A stretch of 63,381 bases of DNA, counting the filler, from Reticulomyxa filosa (lineage: Eukaryota > Protista > Foraminifera): NCBI GenBank assembly GCA_000512085.1. It is 11 parts of 11 records of this genome, joined end to end, with 100 filler letters (N's around TTAATTAATTAA, not from the genome) between each part and the next. Parts side by side here need not be neighbours in the genome. Positions count along the whole stretch, not along the records: positions 1 to 19,054 come from ASPP01000760.1; 10 more parts are not named here. The stretch is one strand, 5' to 3'. The notes below the pieces were generated by a model that saw nothing but the letters and a program-made list of their open reading frames with translations, was not told the DNA's origin and did no database searches. Shown in pieces: positions 1 to 19,054 of this stretch. How positions within the stretch are numbered: position 1 is the stretch's first letter; each line of letters starts with the position of its first letter. Position numbers and translations under genes: made by a program.

Positions 1-1930
1 GGATGGCAAATATTCAACAGCATATATCTCGTTTGTATGTCCTTTGAAGATATGAATTTGTTTTCCTGTTCGAACATCCCACAGTCGAACTGTCTTGTCA
101 CTCGATCCAGAGCATATCACATTGCCGCCAGCAATACTTGTTTCATTTCTTGAATATTTTACATTTATTACGCAATTTTCATGTCCGTTGAAAACAATCA
201 ATTGTTTGGTGTTTTCGATATCCCACAAACGAATGGTTTTATCATACGATCCAGAGCAAATGGTATATCCAGCACCACCAATCACACCGATTTTATTAGT
301 ATCTTTACTATTACTTTGCAATGGTGAAAATTCAACACAGTAAATAGTATTTGAATGTCCTTAAAAACATGCAATGATTTCGATGTCTCAATATCCCATA
401 AACAAATGGTACTATCAGATGATCCAGAACACAAATATTTTCCACCAGTGAATGGTGAAAATTGAACGGTGAAAATACAATCACTGTGTCCTTTGAAGGT
501 CTGATATTCTTTTGCTGTTTTGATGTCCCAAAAACGGATTGTTTTGTCATATGATGCTGAACAAATGGTAGAGCGATTATGATTACGATGATATGGAGAG
601 AATTTTGCACTACGAACAGCACCTGAATGTCCATTAAAGATCTGGATTTGTTTGTCAGTATCCAAATCCCATATACGAACAGTGTTATCATGCGATCCAG
701 AGCAAAGAAATCGACCACCATCAAGTGAAGAGTATTGAAGATTACATATAAGGCTGGAGTGTCCACTAAAAATTTTGAGTAGTTTAGAAGAGCGAAGCAA
801 GTCAAAAGTGTAAGTGGAAGAGTGTTTGGAGTTGTAAGACAGAATATTATCATTTTCTTTTTGTTCATCTTTGTTGGACAGTTTTTGAATATCTTGGATG
901 AGTTTCTCATTCCTTTCTTCCAAAAGTTTAACTAATTTATCATAATGGGATAATAGCTGTTTTTCCTTTTCATTGAAATCTTTTTTGATAATTTCAATGT
1001 CAGCACGTAGTTTGAGTAATTCTTGTTGATATTCTCTTTGTATTTTTTTAATTTCATTTTCTTTTTCTGACAATTCTTTTTGTTTCAATTCCATTGTCTC
1101 ATTTATTTTGCCATTAATTGTATTGTTTCTTTCTTCAATGATGTATTTTCATTAACCAATATTTTATTTTCCTCATTCTTCATTTCATTGGATTCTACTT
1201 GTAATTTTAATTGTGTTATCTCATCCTATTTTATTTTTATTATTACTATTTGTAATTGCCTTTGTTTGCTTTTAAAAAAATGATTAACTTGATGAAGTTG
1301 GATTGTTTGTTTTAATGAATCAACAAATTTGACAACCAAATCAAAGTGTAATTTTAAATTTGAGACCAAATGTTGTTGTAATTTTTGTTTTGGACATGCA
1401 TGGACACATCCAAATGGTTTGTACCAACAATCGAATAATTTCAAAGAACAGGAATTATCCAGATGATCATTTAATTCTTTGACTTTTCCTTTAAAATCAC
1501 ATGTTACTTTTCCATTTCCTTCCTCTTCTTCTAGTTGTTGTCCTTGAGTGGTCGTCTGTGAATCTTGTTGAAATTGTCGTGGACATATAACTTGTAAATC
1601 ACCAATATGTAGTTGAGCCACTCGGCTTGGAGAATACAAACAACCATTATGAGGCTGAACAGGACAAGAATTAGAATTAATACTTAAGAATTGCTTTAAA
1701 CAATTCGCCCCAACAATAAGCGATTCATTCGAGTCTTGATGTTGTGAACAGCTTATTTCAATAGGATTTCTGGCAACTTGTTTGCAAATCAAACAAATAA
1801 AATGATTAATTTGCTCTTTCTGGTTCAATTGTAAAACCCACTCTTTACTGAAACAAGAAGTCTCTAAGTTTTCTGGAGACGCTCCAGTTTTTCTTTCTTT
1901 TGAAGTTTTTTCGTCTACTGTGCTGCTCAT
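1..1930 (-). CDS. Degenerate RING/TRAF-type zinc finger - coiled coil - WD40 repeat protein (3' end runs off the window)
   Basis: ORF 1226..1930 has CLIC...C..H...C...CP and TRAF-like CDFKGK...HLDNSC...CWYKPFGC...H motifs. Intron 1226-1288 (GT..AG) is followed by a coiled coil and GH...WD repeats (GHSSLIC...SGSHDNTVRIWD, GHSGAVR...FWD). Continuity needs single-A frameshifts at ~1114 and ~361. Confidence 0.85.
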
Positions 1931-2357
1931 TGTTCTAATGATTGCACAAAGATTATTGATTGTGTAAAGTTTTTTCTTTGAGTTTTTTTTTATGAACGAG
2001 GGAGAGCAACAACGAATTTGTGAACGAAATTAGAACAAGAATTGTGTGAGAAAATGGAGAATTTTATTTGTATACAAAAAATTAATTGTTTGAATAGTCT
2101 TTATTCACTTAGTATAAAGTTGAATGCAATAGAAAACAAACAGTTAGAAATCGCAATGGAAAATACTATTTTCAAAAGGACGATGAAAATATTGTATCAT
2201 AATCCAAGCATATTACTATCAATTTCCACAAAAAACTCTCGTTTTGTTATTTTATGGCAACAAAATGGACTTATTGAACAATTTTCATGTGAGAATTTGT
2301 AAATAATAAAATATGTTTATTTTCTTTTTGTGTTTGTTATATTTTCACATTCTTCTT

Positions 2358-2900
2358 TTATTGATAGAAAAACGATATTATCCCCAAAATGAAACGACCA
2401 TCTTTTGAACTATAACACAAATTAATATCACAATTACAATTACTTTTGTTGTCCTTTTTTAATTGTAGGAATTTAAGACAATACTCAATTATCTTTTTTT
2501 TATCTCCTTTGATCACATTCAATTCATTCTTATTTGATCGAATATCCTCATTTAATCCATATTCTATACTACTCATATCATTATGTCCATTGGAAACATA
2601 CAACGACTTGAGTGTTTCAACATCCAATAAACAAATTGTTTTGTCAAATGATCCAGAACATAAACATCTAACATCATTAACGATGACAACTCAATGCTAA
2701 ATAAAAGTAATAGTATTGGTATGATTGGTGGTAATGGATATACAATTTGTTCTGTATCAGATGATGAATTAAACAATTGATTGATTTTAAGATAAAGTGC
2801 AGTGAATATTGTAAAATATAGATCAAATGAATTAGAGATGGTGCAAATTCAATATTATCTGGTCTGAAGATTGAAGTGTTCGATAGACACGCGATTATGT
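2358..2900 (-). pseudogene. Degenerate WD40 gene remnant, paralogous to the 3' part of the 1..1930 gene
   Basis: Fragments IGMIGGNGYTICSVSDD, CLCSGSFDKTICLLDVETLK and NLCYSSKDG are spread over several frames with deletions and stops. Confidence 0.65.
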
Positions 2901-3995
2901 TGTAGGGCAAGTCCCTATTATACAATCTCAAATACTAATGGAACGGTGGGACCCCCGGTAGGTTAAAACCCTCTTCACAACTCACTTTTGTGTTTTCTTT
3001 ACTTGTTTTCTTTTCTTGTGTTGAAATTATTTTTGTTAATTTAATTTCCTTTTACTGAAGTTGCTTTTTGGAACTAAGTTCCTTTCGTGTTACACTTAGT
3101 CGCTAACTGTTCCTACAATGTGTACACTATTGAATATTCAATTTTTGTTCATTTTCCGTCAATAACTCTAAAAAACCAATGAAAACGTAAATCTGTAGTT
3201 GATGAACTATAAGTGGCTAAAAAACTCCAATTTTATATTATGAGATTGAGTTAATAAGCATGCTGTTGTAAATGGAAAATAAAAGATATTTAATTGTGGC
3301 TCTTCATCGAAAAATTAACCTTCTACATATTTAAAAATAATTCTATTAAAATAATCACTTCGTCCTAATTTTATCTTTAAAGTTTGAATCCAATGTCGAA
3401 TAGTGCATTTTATTTCATTTTTTGACTGTTCAATATTATTTATCAGCGTGCCTTACAACAATGAACCAGCTTGGAGCCACGTATTGATTTGCTCTTTTGG
3501 AAAGGCTAGAATCTTCCTCCATGATTTAGTCTAAAACCTTTTAAAGCGTGCAGTGCTGGATCATGAGTGAGAGGTCGGATGCTAATACAATCAGCAAACA
3601 AATATATTGCATTAAAGTGGTTTGATGACCAGAAAGGTGTAACATTTCGACCGTTTTAAGAACATCTTTGTTACAATAGTTTCAACGGAACACTTACTTT
3701 GTACTTGTATCGTTTGCCAAGTTCATATTACTTAATGATTTTTAGCTATTTTGTTTCATCAAGATCATAATAAATGAAAAATTATATCCTAAATATTTAC
3801 CTTTTTATTACATAAGCGAGAAACGTAAAAAAACTGCAGTATGACTATAAATTTGTTTTTTAAAACTTATCATTTTTATACTTATCGCTTCTTTTTCAAG
3901 TATAAACATTTATATATTACATTAAGGAAATAATTAACAAGTTAAACAATCTCTGTTTTTTGTCCAAAGAAACAAACGTAAAGTGAAAATATATA

Positions 3996-6900
3996 TCAAT
4001 TACATGAGCTGCGTTTAAACAACTCATAGAGATAGGCATAGCCAGTAGCGCAGTAATCCCAAGTGAGTAATTCTTTCGGAAAAAATTCCAACTCATTGTC
4101 AAAAAACATGATATTGTCTAACCAATTACTGAAGGGTTCTTTTTTGTTCAAGTCTCTTATATTTTGTCCCTCGCTTTGCACAACCTCTCTCCAGGCATCT
4201 AAAATTTGCTTTACTATTCCCAAAGGTGTCTTTTTTATCATTTCTTGCAGTTGTTGTTTTAATGAATCTGTTAAAGGTTCTCTGTACATGTCCAACACAA
4301 AATTGTTAATTGTACTTCTATCGACAAACTCCAACAGCACAGCATCGTGTAAAAGTCGCCATAAGTTGCACATATGTCTGCACAGTATGAAACCCTTTTG
4401 TTGCCCTTCCAAATTCACCAAAAATAGTTTGCAACTTTTCTCATCGAACAACATTTGTTTAAGTAACTCCACAAATTGCTTGTCTCTATGCAAAAAAAAA
4501 AAAAATTGTCAAAATATTAAGAAATACAGACCATTGTTTATTTGCGACTTAACAAATCAATAGTCTTGATATTTTGGGAAACAAAGACAATGACTTCATT
4601 TACGATTTCCAATGCCCTTTGCATTTCACTTTGAGATTTCAACGAAGAAAGAAAAGTCTTCAATAATGGCTGGTCCATTGACTCTTTTTTTTAACTCTGT
4701 ATTGTGTTCTTCGACAATGGCTACACAATTTTTGATATTTAATTGATTGGAAAACTGAAAAAAAGGAATATCAATTTCTAAGAATTGACGATTTTTAATA
4801 AATCGATAAGTAATCTCATTTTCAATAGCACTCAAATCCAAAATATTGTTTCGATTTTGATTAATGGCTCCGCATTCCAATGAGGGAAGACTCCATTGTC
4901 GAATAATTTCAGTCACCTGCGCTTTGTCCAAAAATACGACATCATTTCTGTGAATGTCGAACAGAGGCTTATTCTTGCCCATAACTTTTTGTACTTGATT
5001 GGAATCTTCATACTTCTCTTCATTGTTTGCATGCATTTTAGACTCTATCATTACACCTTCTAAAAATGCATTGTGTGCATCTTGTAACAATTGAATGATC
5101 TTCACAATAATCAATCCGTTTTCATTGTTTTGTGCAGTGGAAAACTCTAAACTAATTGAATTATCATCACACAATGCTGGAATAACGAATGACTTGCAGT
5201 CATTTTTTACCTTTTGGTTTGCCAATGCGTTCCAACATGTTTTGAAGCCACTCCATAATTGTCGGTAGGACTCCACTTCACTTTTATATCCTTTTTGTTC
5301 CCACTCTTCAATAGTCTGAGTAATGGTTTTGCCTTGGCACTCTCGCTGTGAAATTTGTCGGGAAAAGTGGAAATATACATGTTTCATCCATTGTCCAATA
5401 ACAGGCAAATATTTTACACTCCAAAGTTCATCCTTGGCACACATCACATGATACAGTAATGGATACTCACTTTCCAATGAAGGCTCAGCCATAAATCTGT
5501 GAGCTAAATCATCAAATGATATTTTATGGATAGTTAAAAACAAATGTGGGACATATTGTTCGCGATAGAATGAATCAAATTCTTTTTTTTCCTCGATTTC
5601 AGAGATCATCGCTTTCAAATCTTCCTCTTCATCTACAATAAGTTTGCTGCGATTGTTCAATTCACAGAATTGTGTGGTTTGCTCAAAAAATCCACGATAC
5701 CGGCTTTCAAACTTTTTTTCAAATTCATACGTGGTGGTAAGGTCTGTTCCATTTAATCCATTTGGATACCACTGATTGAATGTTTGTGGTAAGTTACTCA
5801 ATAATTGATGCAATGCCACAGATAAAAGCTCATCATTTAACTGAGTGATCTTTCCTAACAATCGAAAATAGCCAATTGCCTGTCTCTTCAAAAACTCAGT
5901 CACTTCTGTTGCATCCGTTTTTTGTAACAATTTTTGGAGCTCCTTGCACCCTTCTGAAATGGCTGCATTTCTGATCAACAATGCCAAATGAATCAACAAG
6001 CGTATCAATGTGCAAGATACTTCAGTGATTCGTCGAATTTGCGTAGCACCCTCGTACCTCCAAAACGAATCACCCACTGACAATTCTTCGTCTGATCCAT
6101 CCAAAATATATCCTTTAGGTATTTCTAGTTGCTTCAGTCCTGTGTCCTGACTTCTGTGAGTCTTATCACCAATTTCTCTGCCACATCCATCAACTGTACA
6201 AATTACCCTTTCTATTGGATGACCACAATTGTTGATGATGAATGGATGCATATTTGGACAATAGCGAATCGTGAAGGTGCCTCCATCTTTTCCTCCTTTC
6301 AGTGCGCGAGTTATATTCATCAGCAAATTTTCTGGCATGGATGGAAGATGACCATTCACATACTCTCCAGGATTTAAAATCAACATTCGAAATGGGTTTT
6401 CTATTTTTAAAGAAGGGTATTTTAGGGAAAAATAAAATTTAATGCACAAACTGTCTCAAAAAAAAAAAAAAAAAAAAGAAGTTGTAACTGGTCATAATTT
6501 GGAGTGCACCCAGAAAATGGAAACACAGCCTTGGAATATAGGCATCAGAAGCGTCACTGTCGTAATTCAGTCTTAAACTGGAGGCAGTTGGAGGGAGTTG
6601 TTCACTTAACAATACCTTGGCAAAGTTTTTTTCAATTTCAAAGTTTAGAACATTACATTGTAATAAATAGTCTACTGCCTCTATTTTTTGTTACAATTTT
6701 GGCAAAAGGTATATTAACTTGGACAGAAAAAACTCAATCTACAACAGAGGCACTTAACTTTTAAAATTTTCATTGAAGACAATGCCGTAGAGATTGGATA
6801 ATGACAGAGTTGCACCTAGCAATGGAATGAAATCATTTTTATCTCCATTGTACTGCATATCCATGTCATTTAGTTTATTCCTCTCAAACATTTGTTCCTA

Positions 6901-9900
6901 AAGTCAATATACTTATCTCCGTAAATGCCAATAAAAGGATCTGTACAGGGAAGATCAGATGGGCGATATTTGAATACAGAAAACACATCGCTCATTTGTG
7001 GATCAACAAAGATTGGATATCTTGCACGGATCTCTGCATTTGTGAAAAACATTTGTGTCCAATCCATGCCCTTGGCAATACAAAATTGCTTCAGGAACCA
7101 GATATGCAAACTATGCTGATAACATTTATTGAATTGGTCAAAATATATCAACAATTGAGATGTTTGATGCATTACCGCATTTAGCTTTTGATTATCCTTC
7201 ATCTCTGATATCTTAAGTGTTTTAGTAATGGACAAAATGGAGTTGATACATTGGAACAACTTTGTCTTCACATTTGAGATATTGGCAATGCTTTGATTGG
7301 GTCCATTATATTCAACATTTGGCGTATTTATATAAATACGCTCCAATACACGATTTAACAGAGTTGCTTTATACGTGTCCAATCCAAATGTATCATCGTT
7401 CCATTGATTCAGAACCAATTCCTCAAGGATTTGCAAACGGATCTTATCGGTTGCATGTTGAACACTTTGAGTCAATTCACTTGCATTGTGAAAGATATCG
7501 GTTATCACAGAGTGATAGACTCTCTTTTTATTTGGAGTGTCAAGTTCTTCAATGTTTTGTACTGTTGTTAATACATCTCGAACGAAATGTGGACGTTTGT
7601 CCAAAGCGAGATTTCCTCCTTTGAGCATACACTTTAAAATATCTGGTATCGTGTTTTTGTCATTCAACCATCCATTCTCTGATAACGACATTACACTAGA
7701 CAATGCTGTATTCAGCTTCTCTTGGCTAATCATTTGCCTTCCAAAATGTTTCGCTCCCAGGATTTGCATTTGCACTTGCCGGCACATGGCCAATATCGCA
7801 TTATATTCTTTGCAATTATCATACCAATCTTTTGCAAATTGTATAATTGTTGGAATTACACTTTCGACTGCCTCCAAACTTCTGATAATGTCACTCCATT
7901 CATTTTCTAATAACGCACATAAAAAGAAGGTAAGATTCTGATAAAGTTTTGCAGAGAAAAACAGAAAAAAACAAAAACAAGAAATGCAAAGGCAAACCAG
8001 ATGAAAATGAAATAAAATGTTTCAACAGCAAGCGAATGGAGCTACTCAGTCTTGTACTCTCATTCTCATTGTTCAATAATGTATGCAATTCCAAAACGAT
8101 GCCACTGCCATCTTGGCAAAGTTTCAAAAGTTTCACGTACGTTGCAAAAATATCAGGCAAAAAATGTAAGATGGACTCAATCATTGCAATGGATGCCTCC
8201 GAATTGAGAATGTAAATCATTGCAAACATAACCTTTGCAACGATTTCAGCCTTGTGCTGTTTCAAATTGTATTTGGCCGCAATGATATCCACAAAATACA
8301 TTCGACAATGTTCAGCATTACACATATTCAAATATTTTAATGCATTTTCACCGTCCATCATCACCTTTAGCAAATTGGAACTTTGAAGTACTTTACGATG
8401 GCTTTCTAATCTAATCTTATTTCCATTTTCGTTGTCATTGCCATTTCCATGTTGATTCTCGTATTCGTATTTATTTTCATTTTCACGTTCATTTTCTTTT
8501 ACGTCTTCATTTTCGTGGACAATTAAGTTCGATTTTTGAGCTAGAAGTTGGGTAACAGCACCGGCCAACTTGGAGTGACACCAGTTGTGCAATACGTGGC
8601 TCCATGGGAACATGGCCTCATATTGGATACTAACAGCACGTAAATCCGGCTCAATGCTCACTAATCTCTGCATTACATTTGTTAAGCAAGGGATTGTTAC
8701 CATTGAAGTATCTTGCATAACTTCCACAAACAATCGTGACAAATGCTCACAATTTTTTTCAACTGCATTAAAAAATATCTTTTTTTTTTGTACATATTAT
8801 TACGTGGTGATTTACGTAGCTTTGATTATGTATTTAATTATATCAAAAAAAAAAAAAAAAAAAAAATTTAACTTGGAAATAACAATTTTCATAAAACACT
8901 GACAAAATATTCATACAACCTATAGTCAGTAATCTGTCAATGATATTTTCATATCTTTCTAAAAAGCAACAACCCAATGATAAGACGTCTACATTACTAG
9001 GATTTTTGACTTGTATATTATTTAAAATACACGCAATTGATTTAGACACTACACCTTCTTTAAATAACTGTTTCAACCTCGACACGATTCCTTTTCGACA
9101 TTTCTCTGTCGCAATTGATTCTTTAAATAAAGTCGATAGCTGCTGTATAGCATTACCTCCATTCTTATTGACAGGGAATTGGAGCCGTGCAAATGCGCGT
9201 CGAATCGAATTGTGCAACCGACTATTTGATACATCCTTTCCAAGCACGTCGCACATGGTTTGTGAAAGTAGAGTCTTCAATTGTGCTGGCTCCGTTGAAC
9301 TTAAGCTATCAACATATGTGAATTTCCATTTTCTTGAGAAAATCAATGGAAAAGGATTCTTGAAAATTGGTGGTTTGATATGCACAAGCAAAACAGCCGA
9401 TCTTTGCCTCACTTCTTTTTCTTTTTCTTCTTTTTTGTCACAATAGTATTGATAATGTGCATGTTCTAACGTATGCTTAATGTGCATGAAATGACTGAAA
9501 TTTTTGGAGCCATGCACGTACTGCAGAATCAATAGGTCTTGAGTTGTATTATCCGAGCTGAAGAAGTGATTAATGGTCTGTTCAAAGTCACTCGACTTTT
9601 TGAATGATGCAATTTTCTTTGCTGCACCATTCCATTGATCTGGTAAATTGCACTCAAAGTCACCAGTGAGTATCAATGCCATTTGTTTGTTTGGTTCCAT
9701 TTGTTGCAGTTCGATAACTCTTCCAAAATAAGGGAATTCTTTTTGTGCAGCTTTTTCATACTCAAATTTTGCTCCTTGATCAATTGCAATTTCGAGAATG
9801 ATTTCTGGATTGCATAAAGGTTTAAATAAAGTTACAACTGCATTTTCAATTGCCTCATCAAATTCTGGTTTTTCTAATATTTCTAAATTAACAACATTAA

Positions 9901-12900
9901 ACCATTTTTGCTCTTCCTTTTTTTTTTCTGCTAAAATGTTGAACAATGCCGAAGGTATGGTGTCATTATCAAATCCACAAAACAGTTTTGCCAATTGTTT
10001 TGGAGCCACTCCGAACATTTGAGTTAATCTATCTTCTATTTTTGATATCCATGGCTCCGTTTCAGAGGGTAATGAAGTGCGATAGGATATCAACTGCTTT
10101 TCAAAACGGTTTAAAAATGCAATTGGCATTTCGGGTGCATACGCCGTATCTTTGTTAACAATTACTATGCACTTGAATTGATCCTTCACAAAACAATCCC
10201 TACTCTCACTTCCCAGAGCCACTCGACAATACATTTTTCCTATTTATTTATTTGCCTTTTTTTTTTTTTTTTTTGTTGTTGACGGTTTTTACATAAAAAT
10301 ATATCAAATTTTTAAAAATAATTTTACCAGAGGGCTTTTTTTGGTATCTCTGGTTAAGCATATCATATAAGCTTTCATAAATCGAATCCAATTTATATAA
10401 AATGACTCTTTTCCCAGTGTCCATACAATTAATGACTTTATTTAAATGTTCGTAATCCGAAATACTTGAAGTTTGATCATGTGCAAACTCACTTTTAAAT
10501 AAAAATACATCGTCATTTTTTAAAATTCCATTTTCTAACAAAACTTGCCAAGAATGCTCTAATTCACTGATCACCATACAATGACGACTGATAATATAAT
10601 TGTCTCCAAGCAGTTTTGAATTATTCGTTCGAGTATCCAAAAGATTTCGTTGAACGCAATTCATTGGCGTGAATTTACTCATTTTTTGGTAAACTACTTC
10701 TTTACTAAATCCCAACACGCTCTGAAAAATATCTCCTAAATTTTGGAGTTGGTCCTCTCTTGGAATGCCTCCAAAGTTTCTCATAAACCCTTCAAATGAT
10801 ACATTATAAGAAGGACTTTGGAGTTGGTATCGGATTAAAGAATAGAAATCACGGGCTCCAAAAAATCTTTTTTGTTCATTGATTTAAATGCTTGTGTATT
10901 GATTACTCGCTCATATACTTTGATGGCATTTTCAATTTCCTTTTCTAACCATCCGTTTATCAATTCACCTTGATATGAATTCACATTTTTTTGGTAGTGT
11001 TTCAGCATTTCCAAAGCGGTATTTTTTAACTCTTCTGTCGTCATCGGTGGGATTTGATGCATGATCACTCGATTCATTTTAGCAGCATCCAAAGGCCAAT
11101 TGGAAATTCCAACAAAAGATATCTTTGGATTTTCCAAAAGCTGATGCAATACTTTTAAAGGAGAATGCTTTGAATGTTCTGCCAATCCAATTTCGTCGAG
11201 CAACAATATAGGCTTGATTTGACTGTTCTCACTGTGACGCATTGTCTGATCCCATCGCTCTTTGATTCCTTGCGGTTTGCTATTACGAGTGCATTGGAAT
11301 GCAACGGTATGAATTGGCTTTACAGCAAATGGCAGACTATTCTTCTTTAATCTTTTTTCAAACTCCATTTTATCTTGATGCAGATTGTTACGAACAATTT
11401 GGAAAGATAGAGTCTTTGAGGTGCCTGGTTTGCCTACCAAAACAATTGGAGTGGTAGTCATAATCGACATAAATAAAATGAACAAGTTTTCTTTTAATCC
11501 TTGATTTAATGCAACTCCTGGAGGGATTGCAAATGATTTGCACAACTTGTCCACTTCTTGCTCCAAGAGTTTGGAAAATACAATATCCGCGGAGGACAAC
11601 TTTTCACTCAATTTTTGTCTTTTCTCACTATTTAATCGAAAGTAATAACATAATCCAATGGCAATGTTCAAACCTCGATCAATCCAAGGACTCTCTTTTT
11701 CATTATTCAACTCATCGCAATGCTGTTTCATTAACCACTCAAATATTTTCAAACATCTTGACACATCTCGCAATGAGACAATGATTTTATCTTTCAAACA
11801 TGTGCGTAAAAAATTTTGAGTGATTGTAATCTTTTCCAAAATTTTACTTTTCAATTTTTCAAAATCTTCATGCAATTCATCAGAAATCTCACTTTGCACT
11901 TGATTTGTCATTTCTGCAATATATTGTTGCTCATCCGAATCTGACAGTCTTCCAAATGACCATACGTACTCCTTCATGGTCTCACACAATGGATACACGC
12001 GATATACGTATTTGCTCAGTTCGTCATTTACTAACTGTCCATCATCTTCCCCATCACTCAATTTGCGTTGTCGATATGGATTGCACGCGGCAATGATTTT
12101 AATACCCTCTGGTATTTTCACTCCGTCCAATGTATGATTGCACACCAATTCATTCAGCCAACCAATATCTGGGGAAGTGTTGATTTCATCTAAAAATATC
12201 CATTGTTCTCGATCTCTCTCATTCTTTTTCTCATCGCTCTCCCATTTGTCCACACATCTTTTGACAATGTTTCGAAGATCCTCTCTTCCAAATCCACCGT
12301 GTACATCGACGGCTTGCAAGGAAATATCGGCTACTTTGGCTAGACATTTGATCAATGATGTCTTTCCACAACCTGTTTCTCCCATTAAAATAATCGGAGT
12401 ATTGGATCGTATCCTCAAATATATTGCAATCATTTTCAATATATTGTCATAAGTTAATACATAATGTCGAAACTCCCCGTCCTTCCTATTTTCGATTATC
12501 ATTTCTGGCTCTTTTTTTTCATCTGACATGAACTCCATTCCCCATAACTCCATTTTAATCTTTGTCTTTAGTGTTTCTTTTGTGCCAACAATGCGAAACA
12601 ATAGCTCTGTTCTTTTGTGTTTTTCTTCAATTTCTGCAGACATTTTTGGCATATTGTCTTTCTTTGTTAACTTAATTTTTGTAAAATGTGTATGTATACG
12701 TATGTATGTGCACAGCCTCTATTTCTCACATGTATATAATTTTATTGAAGAAAAGACCTTCCATTCGGTTGGGATTGAATCGTTTCGGGCTTTCATTTCT
12801 TCATTCCAGTTCAGGAGTGTAAAACCCAGATCGTGAAAGATTCGCAAAAAATGTCGAGATGCCAATTTTGTGTCGTTGATCAATGTTGAAATGGTACCTT

Positions 12901-15900
12901 TTTCAAGAAAGATATCGGCAAACTTAAAAAATTAAAATTTTTTAAAATTAGAAACACATTGGACAAACCTGCATCGTCCTGATTGACTAAATACAGAAAA
13001 TTTTTGGATTGTTGCCATTGCTTGCACAAATAAAACTCGTCCTCTCCTTTGCTCTCATCGACATCATCTTGGTTGTGCGCGTACAATCGACAGGAAAGAT
13101 CCGTGCTGATCGCAATAACCGACTTGGTAACTTCGTGTTTAAAGCGCAAAGGCCATTGTCGGCTTTCCTCGTCTTCATTCCGTAAAAAAACAGAGTCACT
13201 CAAGGGAACAAACTGATTAAATAGATACTTGTAAAAAGCAGTTTGATGCAATGGAGAAGCTTGTTCAATTTTTGGACAACAAGTTTTCATAATTTCAGTC
13301 ATTTCTGCGGGCTGCAGATCGACCATTTTTTTCATGTCAGGATCTTTGTCCCTATTGTTTTTATTGGTTTATTTGTTCGTCTGTTTTAATTGTGCACAAG
13401 ACAATACATGCAATCAAATTTTTTTTTTTTTTTTTTGCAAACTTTAAATTTCCAGCATTGAATTCTTTCATCCATTTGATTGCAAACCGAGCTTCTGGAC
13501 CGAATACGTACGGATTGGTTTTTTTGGACACTTTTACAATAGGAAGCTTTGCCGAAGAGAATACTGTATGCAATACCTTTTTGTAATCGTTATCAATTCC
13601 ATTCAATTTAAAAGGCATTTCAATTAAAAAGGCCATGTTCGTATTGACATGGAAACATTGTGATGCCAACACTTTCAATGTTGTGTTGACATGCTGCAAA
13701 AATAACAGCTCAAAAAAAAACGTATTTGCTGAAGCTGAAATACAAGAGGAAATATCCAAATGATATACTACCAGATTATCAACATGATAATTGAGTTTGA
13801 AACATTTGGTTTTGATATCAATTAAATTGTTTTGCACTTGCTCCTCAATTGTGCAAGGATGATGCCTCCAAAGCCCTTCCATTATACTTTTCCAATCCAT
13901 TGTGCCACTATTGAGTGCGATGCGCACTGCTTGCACCTTTGGATTCATACTTCGAATTGATTCAATATCTTGTTCAATCTTGAAGCTTTTGCCCATACCA
14001 ATTTGGTCAGAGATATACAATTGCACAAATGGCTTGTTGTTGTTGTTGTTGTTATTGAGATTGACAGAAGAATTTTGCAAAGCAAATGCTTTCAAATCGT
14101 TACAATACAATTGCTGAATTAAGAGATTTGGAGTCTGTTCGTTCATGGCAATACGCTTAGACAAGCGAAAGGGATTCAGTTTTTGAGATAGCATATTGTC
14201 GAGCGAGTTTGACATAACAATTAATAGATACGGAATTTTTTTTAGGTCGTCCAACGCTTTTTGACTTAATAACAAATTATGAAATAACTTGGTAACTGGC
14301 TCCAATGTTTCAAGTGGTAACATTTCCGGCCACATTAAGCAATACAATGAAGGGTGGGCTTGATTGGCCGAAGTAATGGCTCGGAACAGCAAGCATTCGA
14401 TTTCCTCTTCCGTCGTATTTTCTTTGCATATTAAAATGTGCTCGATACGAGGAGTGACTCCAAAATTTCTGAACAGCTCTAAAATATCAAGCATTTTATC
14501 ATAATCTTGAATTATTAAATTAGGTTTGCTATATTCAAGTCCGCAGAAGGGTTTATTACAATATACGTCATTAGAGTGTCTCAAATTAGTCCAAATTTTG
14601 GAAAACACAGCTCCGAATTGACTCAATACCTTATCCCCTTGTGCAGGTTCACATTCCCATTTTTCGACAAAAGGTAAGACATTGGAGAGAGTGGAGTCAA
14701 TACGTTGCAAAAATGGTAAAATAAATTTGGAGCAAAGTATTGCTCGATGTTCTTGGGCACAGTTTATAATATCATTTAATTTTTGAGAAAGACAACGTAC
14801 TTCATTGAATGTAAAGTAATTCAATATTGGATACTCTTTCCTAAATTTCACACATTCATTTTGCCAATTTTCTAATCTTTTTTTCCATTCGCTGTGCAGA
14901 TCTTTAAACTCTGCCAATGTCTTTTTCACGGACAAATGCAACTTGTCTGTCGCTTGTCGGCCACCTTTCCTCCAAAACATCGCTCGTAATGTTTCAATAT
15001 CCTTGCACACTCCAAACTTTTCAATCAGACTCTGTATCTTTTTCAACTCCTTTTCTTTGGAAAATCCCAATAATACACGATCAATGGCCTGTTCAAGTTG
15101 ATCGCAATTCAGTGTTTGTGATTTACTTTGATCGTTGATGGCTCCAATTTGCAAGATGAGCCTTTCACTTGTCTGTCCTTTCTCTTGCAATACTTGGTCG
15201 CATCCGGCAAAAGTCCATTGGGCATTTTGCGTTGCCTTTTCCAATATACGAAGGCTTTGAGAAGCTTGAAATCGATCTGCTTCATCGACAAGCAAAGAGA
15301 TACGATACAGATTCTCGCTGCAGCACTTTTTAAATTTGGCAGTGAAATCATTATCACGTTTGTGAATTTCCAAAATTGCTTTTGCAACTTGACTTGTCTC
15401 TTTTAAATCGGCATCCCAAATATGCTCGCGGATATTTTCATTGACTGCACGCAATGCACCTACCAATTGTTGGAAGTGGATTTCATTGCAATTGTCCAAT
15501 GTTTCCATTGTGTTTGCAAAATGCTCTTTGTTTGCAAAGTTTTGATTGGTTGCCAATTGTTTGATCAAGCCTTCATCATGTTTCGTAATCAGATCCAACA
15601 ATGTCTCACACTCCGAAACTTTATCACCAAAGCATCTCATGCATTCGTCATAACATGCGGACAAGTATTGAAGTGAAGACTCTTTACCTTCAATTGCGTT
15701 AACACTGTTCCGCAATGACTGCACAAAACGATACCAAGTGTCATCGGTTTTTATTGTGCAATTTAATTTGTGATATTTTTTTAAAATTTCGGTGGCTTTT
15801 TCCAGCTTTGTCCAGGGAATCACCATTTCTTTTAATTGTTTACTCTTTTCACATTCTTTACAGAAATCCTTTGCCATCAATTGCCTTTGTTGCTCAGACC

Positions 15901-18900
15901 AGCTTGGAAACAAAAACTTCAATTCCGAATGCAAATCATCTCCTTTGAACCATCTCAAATCTTCCACAGAATGTTTTTTTTCTAGCCTCTGTATCAACTC
16001 CCTCCATTCTTTGCTTACTTGAGAATAAAGTTTGTCAATACTCAATTTTTCTTGCTTTTTCATTTCTTCTCGACGCATACTCCATAACCTTTTAAACGCA
16101 TAGCTGTCTTGCATATTTGCCAAATGTTCCATTATGTCTTTCTGTTTTTGATACATCTTATGTTCATTCTGATATCTCTGACTTGCTTTTGGAAATGACT
16201 CCAAATCCCAATTGCTACACAAATTACCAAATTCGTTTAACCGTGCAGAGAAATCATTACGTGTCATATAATTTGTCAACAACATTTTATACAACGGCTT
16301 CAACCACACAAAATTTCTGTAGTCTTCCAACATGGTCCATAATGCATTGACTCTGTTTTTTGCAGTCTTGTTGTTTTTCCATCTAGGCAAAGATTGGCTT
16401 ATGGTTTCAATGTTACGTGCGTTGTCATCACGATGAAGAAGCTCGCATACACAAAATGTAATTGACTTATTTTCAATCATTACAAACAACTCCTCTAATG
16501 TCATTTCCACAAAGTTCTGCAAGTGTTTCAATCTTTCTACTTTCTTTAATCTATGTCCAAGCAATGGCAGCCATGGAATACACAAAAAGCAATACTCCAA
16601 ATGACATACCAATTTGTTTTTGTTTACTTTTTCTTCATTGTCCTCGCTTTCTTCATCTTCGTGTTCTTTCTTTTCCTCGATTGCATTCTTGCCTTTGTTG
16701 GCATCTCCTTTGCTTATACTGGACTCCATTTGAACGGGAAGGTCCACAATCACTTTAAATATTTCGTTCAATAATTTCAAATCAGTACATGTCCGTGCTG
16801 GCTCCAAAAATTTTCGCATTGACTCCAAAGATTTGTTGCTCCATTTCTGTTGGCTTAGCAATATTGTCTCTTTTTTCTTTTTAATTTCAGTTAAAAAAAT
16901 GTCTTTGTATTCACCGGGAAGACTCCAAAATCCTGAATGAGATATGAAATACATAAGCCGTCGAGGAGGATCAATATTTTTGCCTATCAAGTTGTCGCTT
17001 ATCCAGTCAATCAAACTTTGGGCCAACAAGTTTTTCAAAGTGTCTTTTTTTTCTTTTTGCGCTTGATACGTAAACAATTTCAGCCACAATCCGAAAGAAC
17101 TCTCATTTGATAGAAGACGCTTTTGCAATCTCTCAAACGCATCCTTGGCTGGTCTTTCAACAGATATATGACCAAATGAACAAAGTACACCAAAAATAGC
17201 CTTTAATGTATACGCGTCATAAATCATTTCCGTTTTGTCAATGTAATAATCCAGTGTTTGCAATACACTTTCCCAACCTTGCCAAATCACATCTTTGTGT
17301 CTCAGCATAAAATAAATGAAAGCAACGAAATTCTTATTTACTTTAACCACCGTATTTCGAAATTTATTGTCATCGAATATGTTCAACAATCTTTTGCGGA
17401 CTTGTTCATCCTTTAGCATGTCTATGATTTGAGGTCTCTCTACAAACTGGCTCCATTTTCCAAATTCCTGTTTGTACAAATTGCAAATGATGTGAACGAA
17501 TTTCGAGTCTTGGTTTATCCACAGTTTGATCCACGTCTCCATCGTCATAATATCTTTATTAGATAGCAAAAGATTCAATATCTCTTCGGATAGACTGTCA
17601 TTTTTTTGAAAATACAATATTTGCATTAAATATTCCACTGCGCATAATCTTGCATTAATATTGAGTAAACATCGAATTTGTTGATCCATCTCGACAACTT
17701 CTACATACCTTGCAGCGATATGCGGCACTTTGTTAAAAAGTTGGAGGTCGAAACTTTTCAAAAGCTCATTATTTGCTTGTGCGTTACAACTGCTTGCCAA
17801 AAGATTGAAACAAGGAATCAACATAAACAATTGAAAACCCTCTGCTTTGGCATGCTCCTTTTCCCCACGTATATTATGTTCCAAGTCACTCCAAAACACT
17901 TTTCTCGCAGTTTCAATTATGTTGCGTGTTTGTGTTGTCACCACACATTTCAACGCAACAAACAACTGCGGTGGAGACAGATATTGTCGTTGCTCTTCAA
18001 GTTGTTCATTTACAAATATAATTTGACAGATCATTTTTTTGCAAAAAAAGAAAAACCAGATTTGTACATTTACATATATGTATATATATACGTATACATA
18101 AGTCTTAACTAGTTTAATGTTTGCTTCGTTTTTATCAAACTGACTTATTATTCTTTGAGATATGCTTTGGAGATCTTTGATAGGCTTTTGAATCACTTCG
18201 ACCATATCACGCATAGCTTGCTGTGCAAATTGAAGTGACTCATTGTCGCCAATGCTTTCTATTAGATGACGAACCACAAAGGTATCTAGGGATTGAGAGT
18301 TATTTTGCACAATGCTATCTTGGAGATCGAACAAAATCTTCCGAGCTTCTAGCAAGTAACCTTGCGTTTTCAATTCAACAAAATAGGCACACTTGTGAGT
18401 CTCAATGTCAATGGATGTGCGTAAGGTGTGATATTTAATATCAACAGTCCAAAAAGTGTTCTTTTTTACTCGAAAATCATTCATGTACAAAAACGTAGGG
18501 TTATCGCTTGCGGGTTTCATTTGATACCATAACTCTACGTAAAAAAAAATTTTTTTTATCCAATAAAGAGCTACTCCAAAAAAAAAAAAAAAAAAAACTT
18601 TTTGGAATCACGACAATCGGCGTGTTTGTATCGTCTGGCTTGATTTCACGACAGAAAACATAAATTCTCACAATCTTGAAAGTATCATCGTTGACATATC
18701 CACTTGCGATGGCAAAATTTGCTTGTGCCTCACAACAGTCCATTTTCTCTTCAAGGAAAATATCGTCACACTTTTGTAACAAACATTGGCGATTGCTTTC
18801 TTCGGTCATCTCATGAAATTCATCCACGACTTTGAGCAGCTTCACGAGTTCTTCATTTTCTCCACTAGCATTTGTAAAATTTGTCTTTTCGTCGTCGTCG

Positions 18901-19054
18901 TCGTGTTTATCTTCTTTTGCATCTTGATTTCGTCTTGAAGAAGACAATGCACGCAACAGTGGATTCGGCGCTTGGCATGGCTTGCAAATGCATCGCACGA
19001 GTATCTCTTTGGCCAAATCCAATTGAATGGCTTTCTTTTTCCACATCACTTGCT
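3996..19054 (-). CDS. RNF213/mysterin-like giant AAA+ ATPase - RZ-finger E3 ubiquitin ligase (5' truncated, >~4,700 aa, multi-exon)
   Basis: RNF213-like motifs occur in the expected order: ISDQIGMGKS, VVYHLDISS..FFFELLFL, YVLTYDNILKM, GETGCGKT (Walker A, ~12360-12383), FLDEIN, AACNPY, VYRVYPL, VSLRDVSRC, GKPGTSKT (~11414-11437), LLLDEIGLAEHSKHSPLKVLH, GISNWPLDAAKMNR, FFGARDFY, RNFGG, YESLYDMLNQ, AFLNRFEK, LPSMPE, the RZ finger (6156-6260) and C-terminal FFP. Frame-preserving GT-AG introns: 18535-18598, ~18000-18110 (uncertain), 13352-13442, 12898-12968, 12671-12757, 10240-10327, 8779-8872, 7907-7997, 6681-6758, 6401-6488, 4486-4553. Frameshifts at 10860-10865, 6891-6893 and 4685-4692. Confidence 0.92.
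6156..6260 (-). other. RZ-type (RNF213/ZNFX1) zinc finger within the giant gene
   Basis: CPNMHPFIINNCGHPIERVICTVDGCGREIGDKTH matches the RZ pattern CPxxHx6CGxPx5Cx2-4Cx3IGx3H. Confidence 0.9.

Follow-up and report, generated by a model that had tools for sequence, protein, structure and literature searches.

A giant RNF213-family gene of Reticulomyxa filosa with a conserved RZ finger and no detectable RING or U-box

The minus strand of a stretch of genomic DNA from the foraminiferan Reticulomyxa filosa (GCA_000512085.1) probably encodes most of a giant protein of the RNF213 family. As read from homology, the protein would have a long N-terminal arm, followed by a dynein-like AAA core in which two units are ATP-competent, then by an E3 region that is helical and divergent, an RZ finger and a C-terminal domain (CTD), with neither a RING nor a U-box. 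Such a RING-less build would be ordinary in the family outside one animal clade, and a ubiquitin ligase route is proposed for it by analogy with mammals. The window, i.e., the whole stretch of DNA analysed here, is 63,381 nucleotides long and is made of 11 parts joined end to end. The gene lies in the first of these (positions 1 to 19,054, from ASPP01000760.1), which is referred to below as the piece.

The RNF213-like gene and its AAA core

The gene is split into about 12 exons by GT-AG introns, which are roughly 45-100 nt long. It is read on the minus strand, with its stop near 3999 and its start past 19054, where the piece ends. The gene and the nucleotide-binding motifs of its AAA core are located as follows.

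3999 to 19054, minus strand: RNF213-like gene, drawn from open segments, junctions and collinearity with the R. filosa proteins P0001-P0004; its 5' end is beyond the piece edge.
12359 to 12382, minus strand: Walker A (GETGCGKT) of the AAA3-like unit, with the Walker B DE at 12185-12190, by alignment to human RNF213.
11411 to 11434, minus strand: Walker A (GKPGTSKT) of the AAA4-like unit, with the Walker B DE at 11192-11197, by alignment to human RNF213.

With a phmmer E-value of 3e-66, the exon at 12652-10835 is aligned to both AAA3 and AAA4 of human RNF213, and both Walker A/B pairs are intact. Judged by homology, the gene is a true member of the RNF213 lineage, i.e., a genuine RNF213 homologue. 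When the exon carrying the RZ finger and CTD was searched against 1.84 billion representative proteins, 203 matches were obtained at E<=0.001. The best of these 203 are R. filosa proteins with 47-76% identity (43-76% for the same pairs in blastp), and the species holds the RNF213-like family in multiple copies. One such protein, ETO16154.1 (P0003), can be followed collinearly along the window, starting where the AAA core ends and reaching the RZ finger.

About 2100 residues of the N-terminal arm precede the AAA3-like Walker A within the piece, and no Pfam family and no PDB chain was matched by this part of the arm. CBM20 was absent at Pfam E<=0.1 from the 1719-residue N-arm exon and from the 5'-most exon in the piece, the exons being searched singly.

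Two other features are seen downstream of the gene. A separate gene with its own ATG occupies 1-1930 of the window on the minus strand and runs past the low end of the piece. It combines a TRAF-type zinc finger (PF02176, E 5e-7) with WD40 repeats, which is a TRAF7-like layout, and it also contains a RING-like Cys/His stretch that starts with CxxC and is not called as a RING by Pfam. Between this gene and the RNF213-like stop, there is a 110-codon open stretch at 2361-2690 (minus strand) with faint WD40 similarity (E 0.05), which may be a remnant or an unmodelled exon.

Frame breaks in the assembled gene

As assembled, the reading frame of the RNF213-like gene is interrupted at two points.

6870 to 6881, minus strand: apparent one-base frame break (GGAAT, ~6881-6873), followed by the stop TAA at 6872-6870; the homologues read through.
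4685 to 4692, minus strand: apparent one-base frame break in an A8 run; R. filosa P0001, P0002 and P0004 continue in the other frame.

The first break precedes the RZ finger by about 130 codons, and the second one lies downstream of it. In tblastn, the frame shifts within 18 nt near 6879, which is too short for an intron. The first-pass annotation, made from the DNA letters before any database search, had described the RZ finger as intact. This holds for its residues, all of which are kept; in the gene as assembled, the frame is broken twice, and the 5' end falls outside the piece. An 'intact E3' depends on both breaks being assembly errors.

The breaks could also mark a recently inactivated paralogue; were both of them real, translation would end at 6872-6870, and the RZ finger would no longer be made. 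Such a pseudogene would be in keeping with the frame changes at ~6879 and 4685-4692, which are seen relative to every Reticulomyxa homologue, and with a multi-copy family in which some paralogues are already without the catalytic dyad. It fits poorly with the remaining exons, which are open over 1748, 627, 466, 383, 609 and 170 codons in DNA of 35% GC, and with the intact catalytic residues and Walker motifs. Short A-rich stretches and homopolymers are typical places for base miscounts in an assembly; the first break is at GGAAT, a short A-rich stretch with two A's, and the second is within the A8 homopolymer. Given the open state of the other exons and the intact functional motifs, miscounting of bases in A-rich stretches during assembly is clearly favoured over a pseudogene, which is considered unlikely.

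The RZ finger and the C-terminal domain

The RZ finger is encoded between the two breaks, and 6260-6156 of the minus strand is the exact translation source of the 35-residue peptide quoted in the first-pass annotation. The finger and its residues are given below.

6156 to 6260, minus strand: RZ-type zinc finger, by Pfam PF20173, a homologue profile and alignment to human RNF213.
6260-6258 (Cys), 6248-6246 (His), 6200-6198 (Cys) and 6185-6183 (Cys), minus strand: zinc ligands of the RZ finger, by alignment to human RNF213.
6225 to 6227, minus strand: predicted catalytic Cys (human C4516, mouse C4462), by alignment; role from PMC12075652.
6156 to 6158, minus strand: predicted general-base His (human H4537, mouse H4483), by alignment; role from PMC12075652 and PMC11549300.

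The peptide scores 39.6 bits against the Pfam family ZnF_RZ-type (PF20173, cut-off 27, E 4e-10). A profile made from 24 homologues, none of them foraminiferal, also matches this stretch (E 3e-20). In a phmmer search of PDB chains, the peptide was aligned to the CPNGH... segment of human RNF213. The human construct in the PDB has 5247 residues, and its numbering is presumably shifted by 40 relative to the native protein. Once this offset is subtracted, the first Cys of the finger corresponds to human C4505. All six defining residues of the RZ finger are kept, being aligned to human C4505, H4509, C4516, C4525, C4528 and H4537. In the human protein, C4505, H4509, C4525 and C4528 are the metal ligands, C4516 is the nucleophile, and H4537 is the general base (PMC11549300, PMC12075652).

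The dyad residues of the window stand at the exact RNF213 spacing (+11 and +9). The last two zinc cysteines form CxxxxC and not CxxC, owing to a two-residue insert. The insert is also present in at least 7 other family members, and the CxxxxC variant co-occurs with an intact dyad in distant ones. On the evidence of these alignments, it is a tolerated variant. An intact RZ finger with its Cys/His pair, a first Cys equivalent to human C4505, a preserved terminal His and an insert of two residues between the last two cysteines had all been put forward in the first-pass annotation, and each of these points is confirmed.

In three R. filosa paralogues, P0007, P0008 and P0011, the four zinc ligands are retained and the Cys/His dyad is gone, and in a fourth, P0001, the ligands are retained and only the dyad His is gone. 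These four proteins, all from R. filosa, resemble non-catalytic 'pseudo-RZ' copies. Since sister paralogues are without the dyad and the window gene keeps it, its retention points to selection for catalysis.

The RZ exon runs on into a CTD of the RNF213 type (E 3e-10 against human RNF213, query residues 18-414), which is completed by the last exon.

3999 to 4508, minus strand: last exon, end of the CTD; aligns with the C-termini of 20 or more family members and R. filosa proteins.

In mammalian RNF213, the CTD is the E2-docking domain, and in the mouse, the E2 contacts are F5093, W5097, Y5106 and E5108 (PMC12075652). The last exon of the window has an aromatic/acidic patch that is out of register with the vertebrate E2-contact motif, and in the alignment, the aromatic contact residues of the mouse CTD and the residues of this exon do not correspond one for one.

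It is conceivable that the RZ finger is only a structural or binding zinc knuckle, in which case the protein would work as an AAA machine and not as a ligase. The fold can be used non-catalytically, as seen in the Reticulomyxa paralogues that have the zinc ligands and no dyad; further, the CxxxxC spacing is unlike that of the mammalian finger, and the E2-contact residues are without recognisable conservation. On the other side, both dyad residues are held at their exact spacing here and are lost in the sister paralogues, and CxxxxC recurs alongside an intact dyad in distant members. A purely structural or binding role is judged improbable, and a catalytic RZ finger is preferred.

Absence of a RING or U-box

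In the stretch that begins with the AAA core and ends with the stop codon of the gene, no RING or U-box could be detected. At Pfam E<=0.1, neither was found in any exon of the window, and the RNF213 proteins of fish and bird, used as controls, were matched by eight to nine RING families where a RING is expected. A family-specific RING/U-box HMM was blank on all window exons at E<=10. When the three relevant exons were compared with a RING/U-box profile by hhalign, there was no match (E 0.5-0.9); the positive control reached 5e-14, the control sequence being itself among those that build the profile. A scan of the coding frame from the AAA core to the RZ finger found no CxxC. Exons and short introns fill all the DNA from 10243 to 4629; this DNA is thus fully accounted for, and no hidden exon is possible in it.

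Two candidates were set aside. A Cys-rich open stretch of 33 codons at 6815-6717 is intronic and without homologue support. The Cys/His stretch near 1795 belongs to the separate TRAF7-like gene.

The first-pass annotation had seen no C3HC4-like cluster in the exons that separate the AAA core from the RZ finger. All four approaches (Pfam, the family HMM, hhalign and the CxxC scan) are in line with this, the controls P0122 and P0128 being positive, and the RING scan is negative on all exons in the piece. Its wider proposal of a naturally RING-less, RZ-only transthiolating E3 stands as far as the intact RZ finger and the lack of a RING or U-box up to the stop are concerned, whereas transthiolation remains a prediction from conserved residues. 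It is very improbable that a RING or U-box nevertheless exists, whether in the 5' part of the RNF213-like gene, which lies outside the piece, or in trans in a partner, for example the gene that follows on this strand (from 1930 downward), where the RING-like stretch starting CxxC is followed by zf-TRAF and WD40, for in every relative that bears a RING or U-box the domain precedes the RZ finger by about 460-510 residues and is never N-terminal, the full-length Naegleria homologue has none anywhere, the about 2100 residues before the AAA3-like Walker A in the piece hold none, and the TRAF7-like neighbour, with an ATG of its own and a Cys/His stretch uncalled as a RING, lies 2 kb beyond the RNF213-like stop.

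The divergent E3 module

Two exons, termed A and B, are putatively assigned to the E3 module.

7998 to 8796, minus strand: exon A, hinge/E3-back-like, collinear with P0003 414-675.
6903 to 7904, minus strand: exon B, helical E3-shell-like region, by AF2 model and MAFFT alignment.

Exon A contains an N/E-rich low-complexity insert of 34 residues (8416-8517, minus strand). The insert is longer than in P0003, the alignment lengths being 301 and 262 residues, respectively. For exon B, the AF2 model based on a 30-sequence alignment has a pLDDT of 85 and a pTM of 0.80 and shows helices only; the AF2 model of the exon 6870-7877 from a single sequence (pLDDT 38) was unusable.

In the MAFFT alignment, the animal RING and the U-box that two other relatives carry share a single site, at which the window and P0003 have a clean gap, between codons 7595-7593 and 7592-7590. 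The RING/U-box site is tentatively placed at 7593/7592 in exon B. The placement is tentative because only the last ~63 residues can be aligned to other clades and the fold searches missed RNF213. The hhalign comparison of foraminiferal with animal E3-module groups gave marginal E-values (0.076 and 0.012), as did the last 63 columns of the module (0.002-0.012). A family HMM built without Reticulomyxa matched only the RZ exon in the window. Sequence searches of the PDB with the exons 6870-7877 and 7900-8742, the 1719-residue N-arm exon and the last exon returned nothing relevant. Similarly, the exon B model retrieved generic helical bundles and repeats, and not RNF213, in Foldseek against the PDB and in VIA-align wide. 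By these comparisons, the foraminiferal E3-back and E3-shell are too divergent for statistical alignment with animal RNF213.

Distribution and evolution of the family

Across the relatives compared, being RING-less appears as the ordinary and common condition in this family, one animal clade excepted. Among the matches with enough sequence upstream of the RZ finger for the RING site to be visible, some of them counted as cluster members, a RING is present in 20, a U-box in 4 and neither in 54. The RING carriers are vertebrates, hemichordates, Lingula and some bivalves, and the U-box carriers form a cluster that includes an Ectocarpus protein. The RING-less members are from Naegleria gruberi, the amoebozoan Clydonella, Picozoa, the fungus Acaulospora and Reticulomyxa, together with scallop 'rnf213-alpha-like' proteins. 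The RING-less giants share the AAA core of the window (E 1e-36 to 1e-91), and in the full-length Naegleria homologue (4882 aa), Pfam finds RZ and AAA only. The first-pass annotation had compared the RING-less gene with animal RNF213; the gene is foraminiferal, and by the counts the RING-less state is the commoner one and no oddity. Its view that RZ and RING are separable is upheld, as both occur independently of each other across the family.

Two RING-less AAA-RZ giants, P0044 and P0072 (3787 and 3861 residues), come from metagenome contigs of 12-17 kb, are apparently intronless and rank with the strongest hits to the AAA core of the window (E 1e-78 to 1e-91). The U-box (PF04564) was located at residues 1701-1760 of P0031 (E 7e-9) and 1876-1938 of P0094 (E 2e-14), about 500 residues before the RZ finger and at the alignment site of the animal RNF213 RING. 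The Ectocarpus protein in the P0031 cluster is 4958 aa long.

The E3 modules of the Naegleria type and of animals are aligned by hhalign with a probability of 99 and E 2e-18, the RING appearing as an animal-side insertion. A quick maximum-likelihood tree of the RZ/CTD region, rooted at the midpoint and with SH-aLRT support only, unites all RINGs in a single clade (96) and the U-boxes in a different one (99), and it places the window with Reticulomyxa (99). By fewest changes, these sequences favour a RING-less ancestor with separate gains of the RING and the U-box. Two gains at the same site would be a coincidence, which keeps alive the alternative of an ancestral domain with many losses.

A broader scenario, to which we give somewhat less than an even chance, can be advanced. 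The AAA-RZ-CTD giants would be ancient and pan-eukaryotic (the span named here covers Discoba, Amoebozoa, Rhizaria, stramenopiles, Picozoa, fungi and animals), and their original E3 chemistry would be that of the RZ dyad alone. The RING in animals and the U-box in a stramenopile-centred clade would have been inserted independently in the same E3 loop, and the foraminiferal gene would represent the primitive state. If this is true, the RING, which gave RNF213 its name, is a late and lineage-specific add-on.

Proposed mechanism

In mammals, the E3 is activated by the binding of ATP to the AAA core, E2~Ub binds on the CTD, and the transfer is carried out by the RZ Cys/His; the RING can be dispensed with, catalysis being the task of the RZ dyad (PMC7311170, PMC12075652, PMC11549300). 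By analogy, the binding of ATP to the AAA core of the foraminiferal protein would switch on its E3 module, and E2~ubiquitin would dock on its CTD. The ubiquitin would then pass to the RZ Cys (codon 6227-6225) and from there to the substrate, with the RZ His (6158-6156) as the putative general base in the transfer. Except for in-register aromatic E2 contacts in the CTD, every element of the mammalian route that can be checked at the sequence level seems to be kept in the window. The ligase activity, including transthiolation, is inferred from these conserved residues only.

Comparison with known systems

That the RING is dispensable and the RZ finger catalytic has already been published, and RING-less relatives are already present in public databases, unremarked, under such names as 'hypothetical', 'ring finger protein' and 'RZ-type domain-containing protein'. 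In the literature searched, which is a limited collection, no description of natural RING-less RNF213 homologues or of their protist spread was found. The gain is modest because the biochemical point has been made, because ZNFX1 already shows the RZ finger working outside RNF213, and because of the similar proteins in the databases. Nevertheless, natural RING-less homologues are the evolutionary counterpart of the mammalian experiments on RING dispensability. They may offer smaller and simpler scaffolds for studying how the RZ/CTD mechanism works and how ATP controls it. The presence of the family across protists suggests an ATP-gated ligase that is older than animal innate immunity.

The closest well-studied system is human and mouse RNF213 (mysterin; PDB 8S24, 6TAX, 7OIK). 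The window gene resembles it in the AAA3-AAA4 Walker A/B motifs, the four RZ zinc ligands, the identical spacing of the RZ dyad and a CTD that is homologous over about 400 residues (E 3e-10). It differs in being without a RING, in an E3-back/shell that cannot be aligned at the sequence level, in two extra residues between the last two zinc cysteines of the RZ finger, in an N-arm that, within the piece, is without CBM20 or any other Pfam domain, and in being about 200-250 residues shorter between the AAA core and the RZ finger.

The engineered RNF213 deltaRING is likewise an RNF213 scaffold without a RING. In mammals, it keeps autoubiquitination and LPS ubiquitylation via the RZ finger (Ahel 2020, PMC7311170; Otten 2021, in the form cited by PMC11549300). 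It is, however, a laboratory deletion, whereas the absence in the window gene is natural and common to whole clades.

The nearest natural counterparts, ETO16154.1 (P0003), ETO35632.1 (P0004) and XP_002682051.1 of Naegleria gruberi (P0168), have the AAA core, RZ finger and CTD, and no RING. P0003 shares the CxxxxC insert, runs collinearly with the window (57-76% identity) and shows RZ as its sole domain. None of the three is identical to the window over the compared exons.

Lastly, ZNFX1 has an RZ finger with the same Cys/His dyad and is without the RING of RNF213 (PMC12075652). In two preprints (bioRxiv 10.1101/2025.09.05.674436, 10.1101/2025.10.14.682297), it is reported to be an E3 ligase that is coupled to an ATPase. 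Its RZ finger is carried on an SF1 helicase scaffold with NFX1-type fingers, unlike the dynein-like AAA ring and RNF213-type CTD of the foraminiferal gene.
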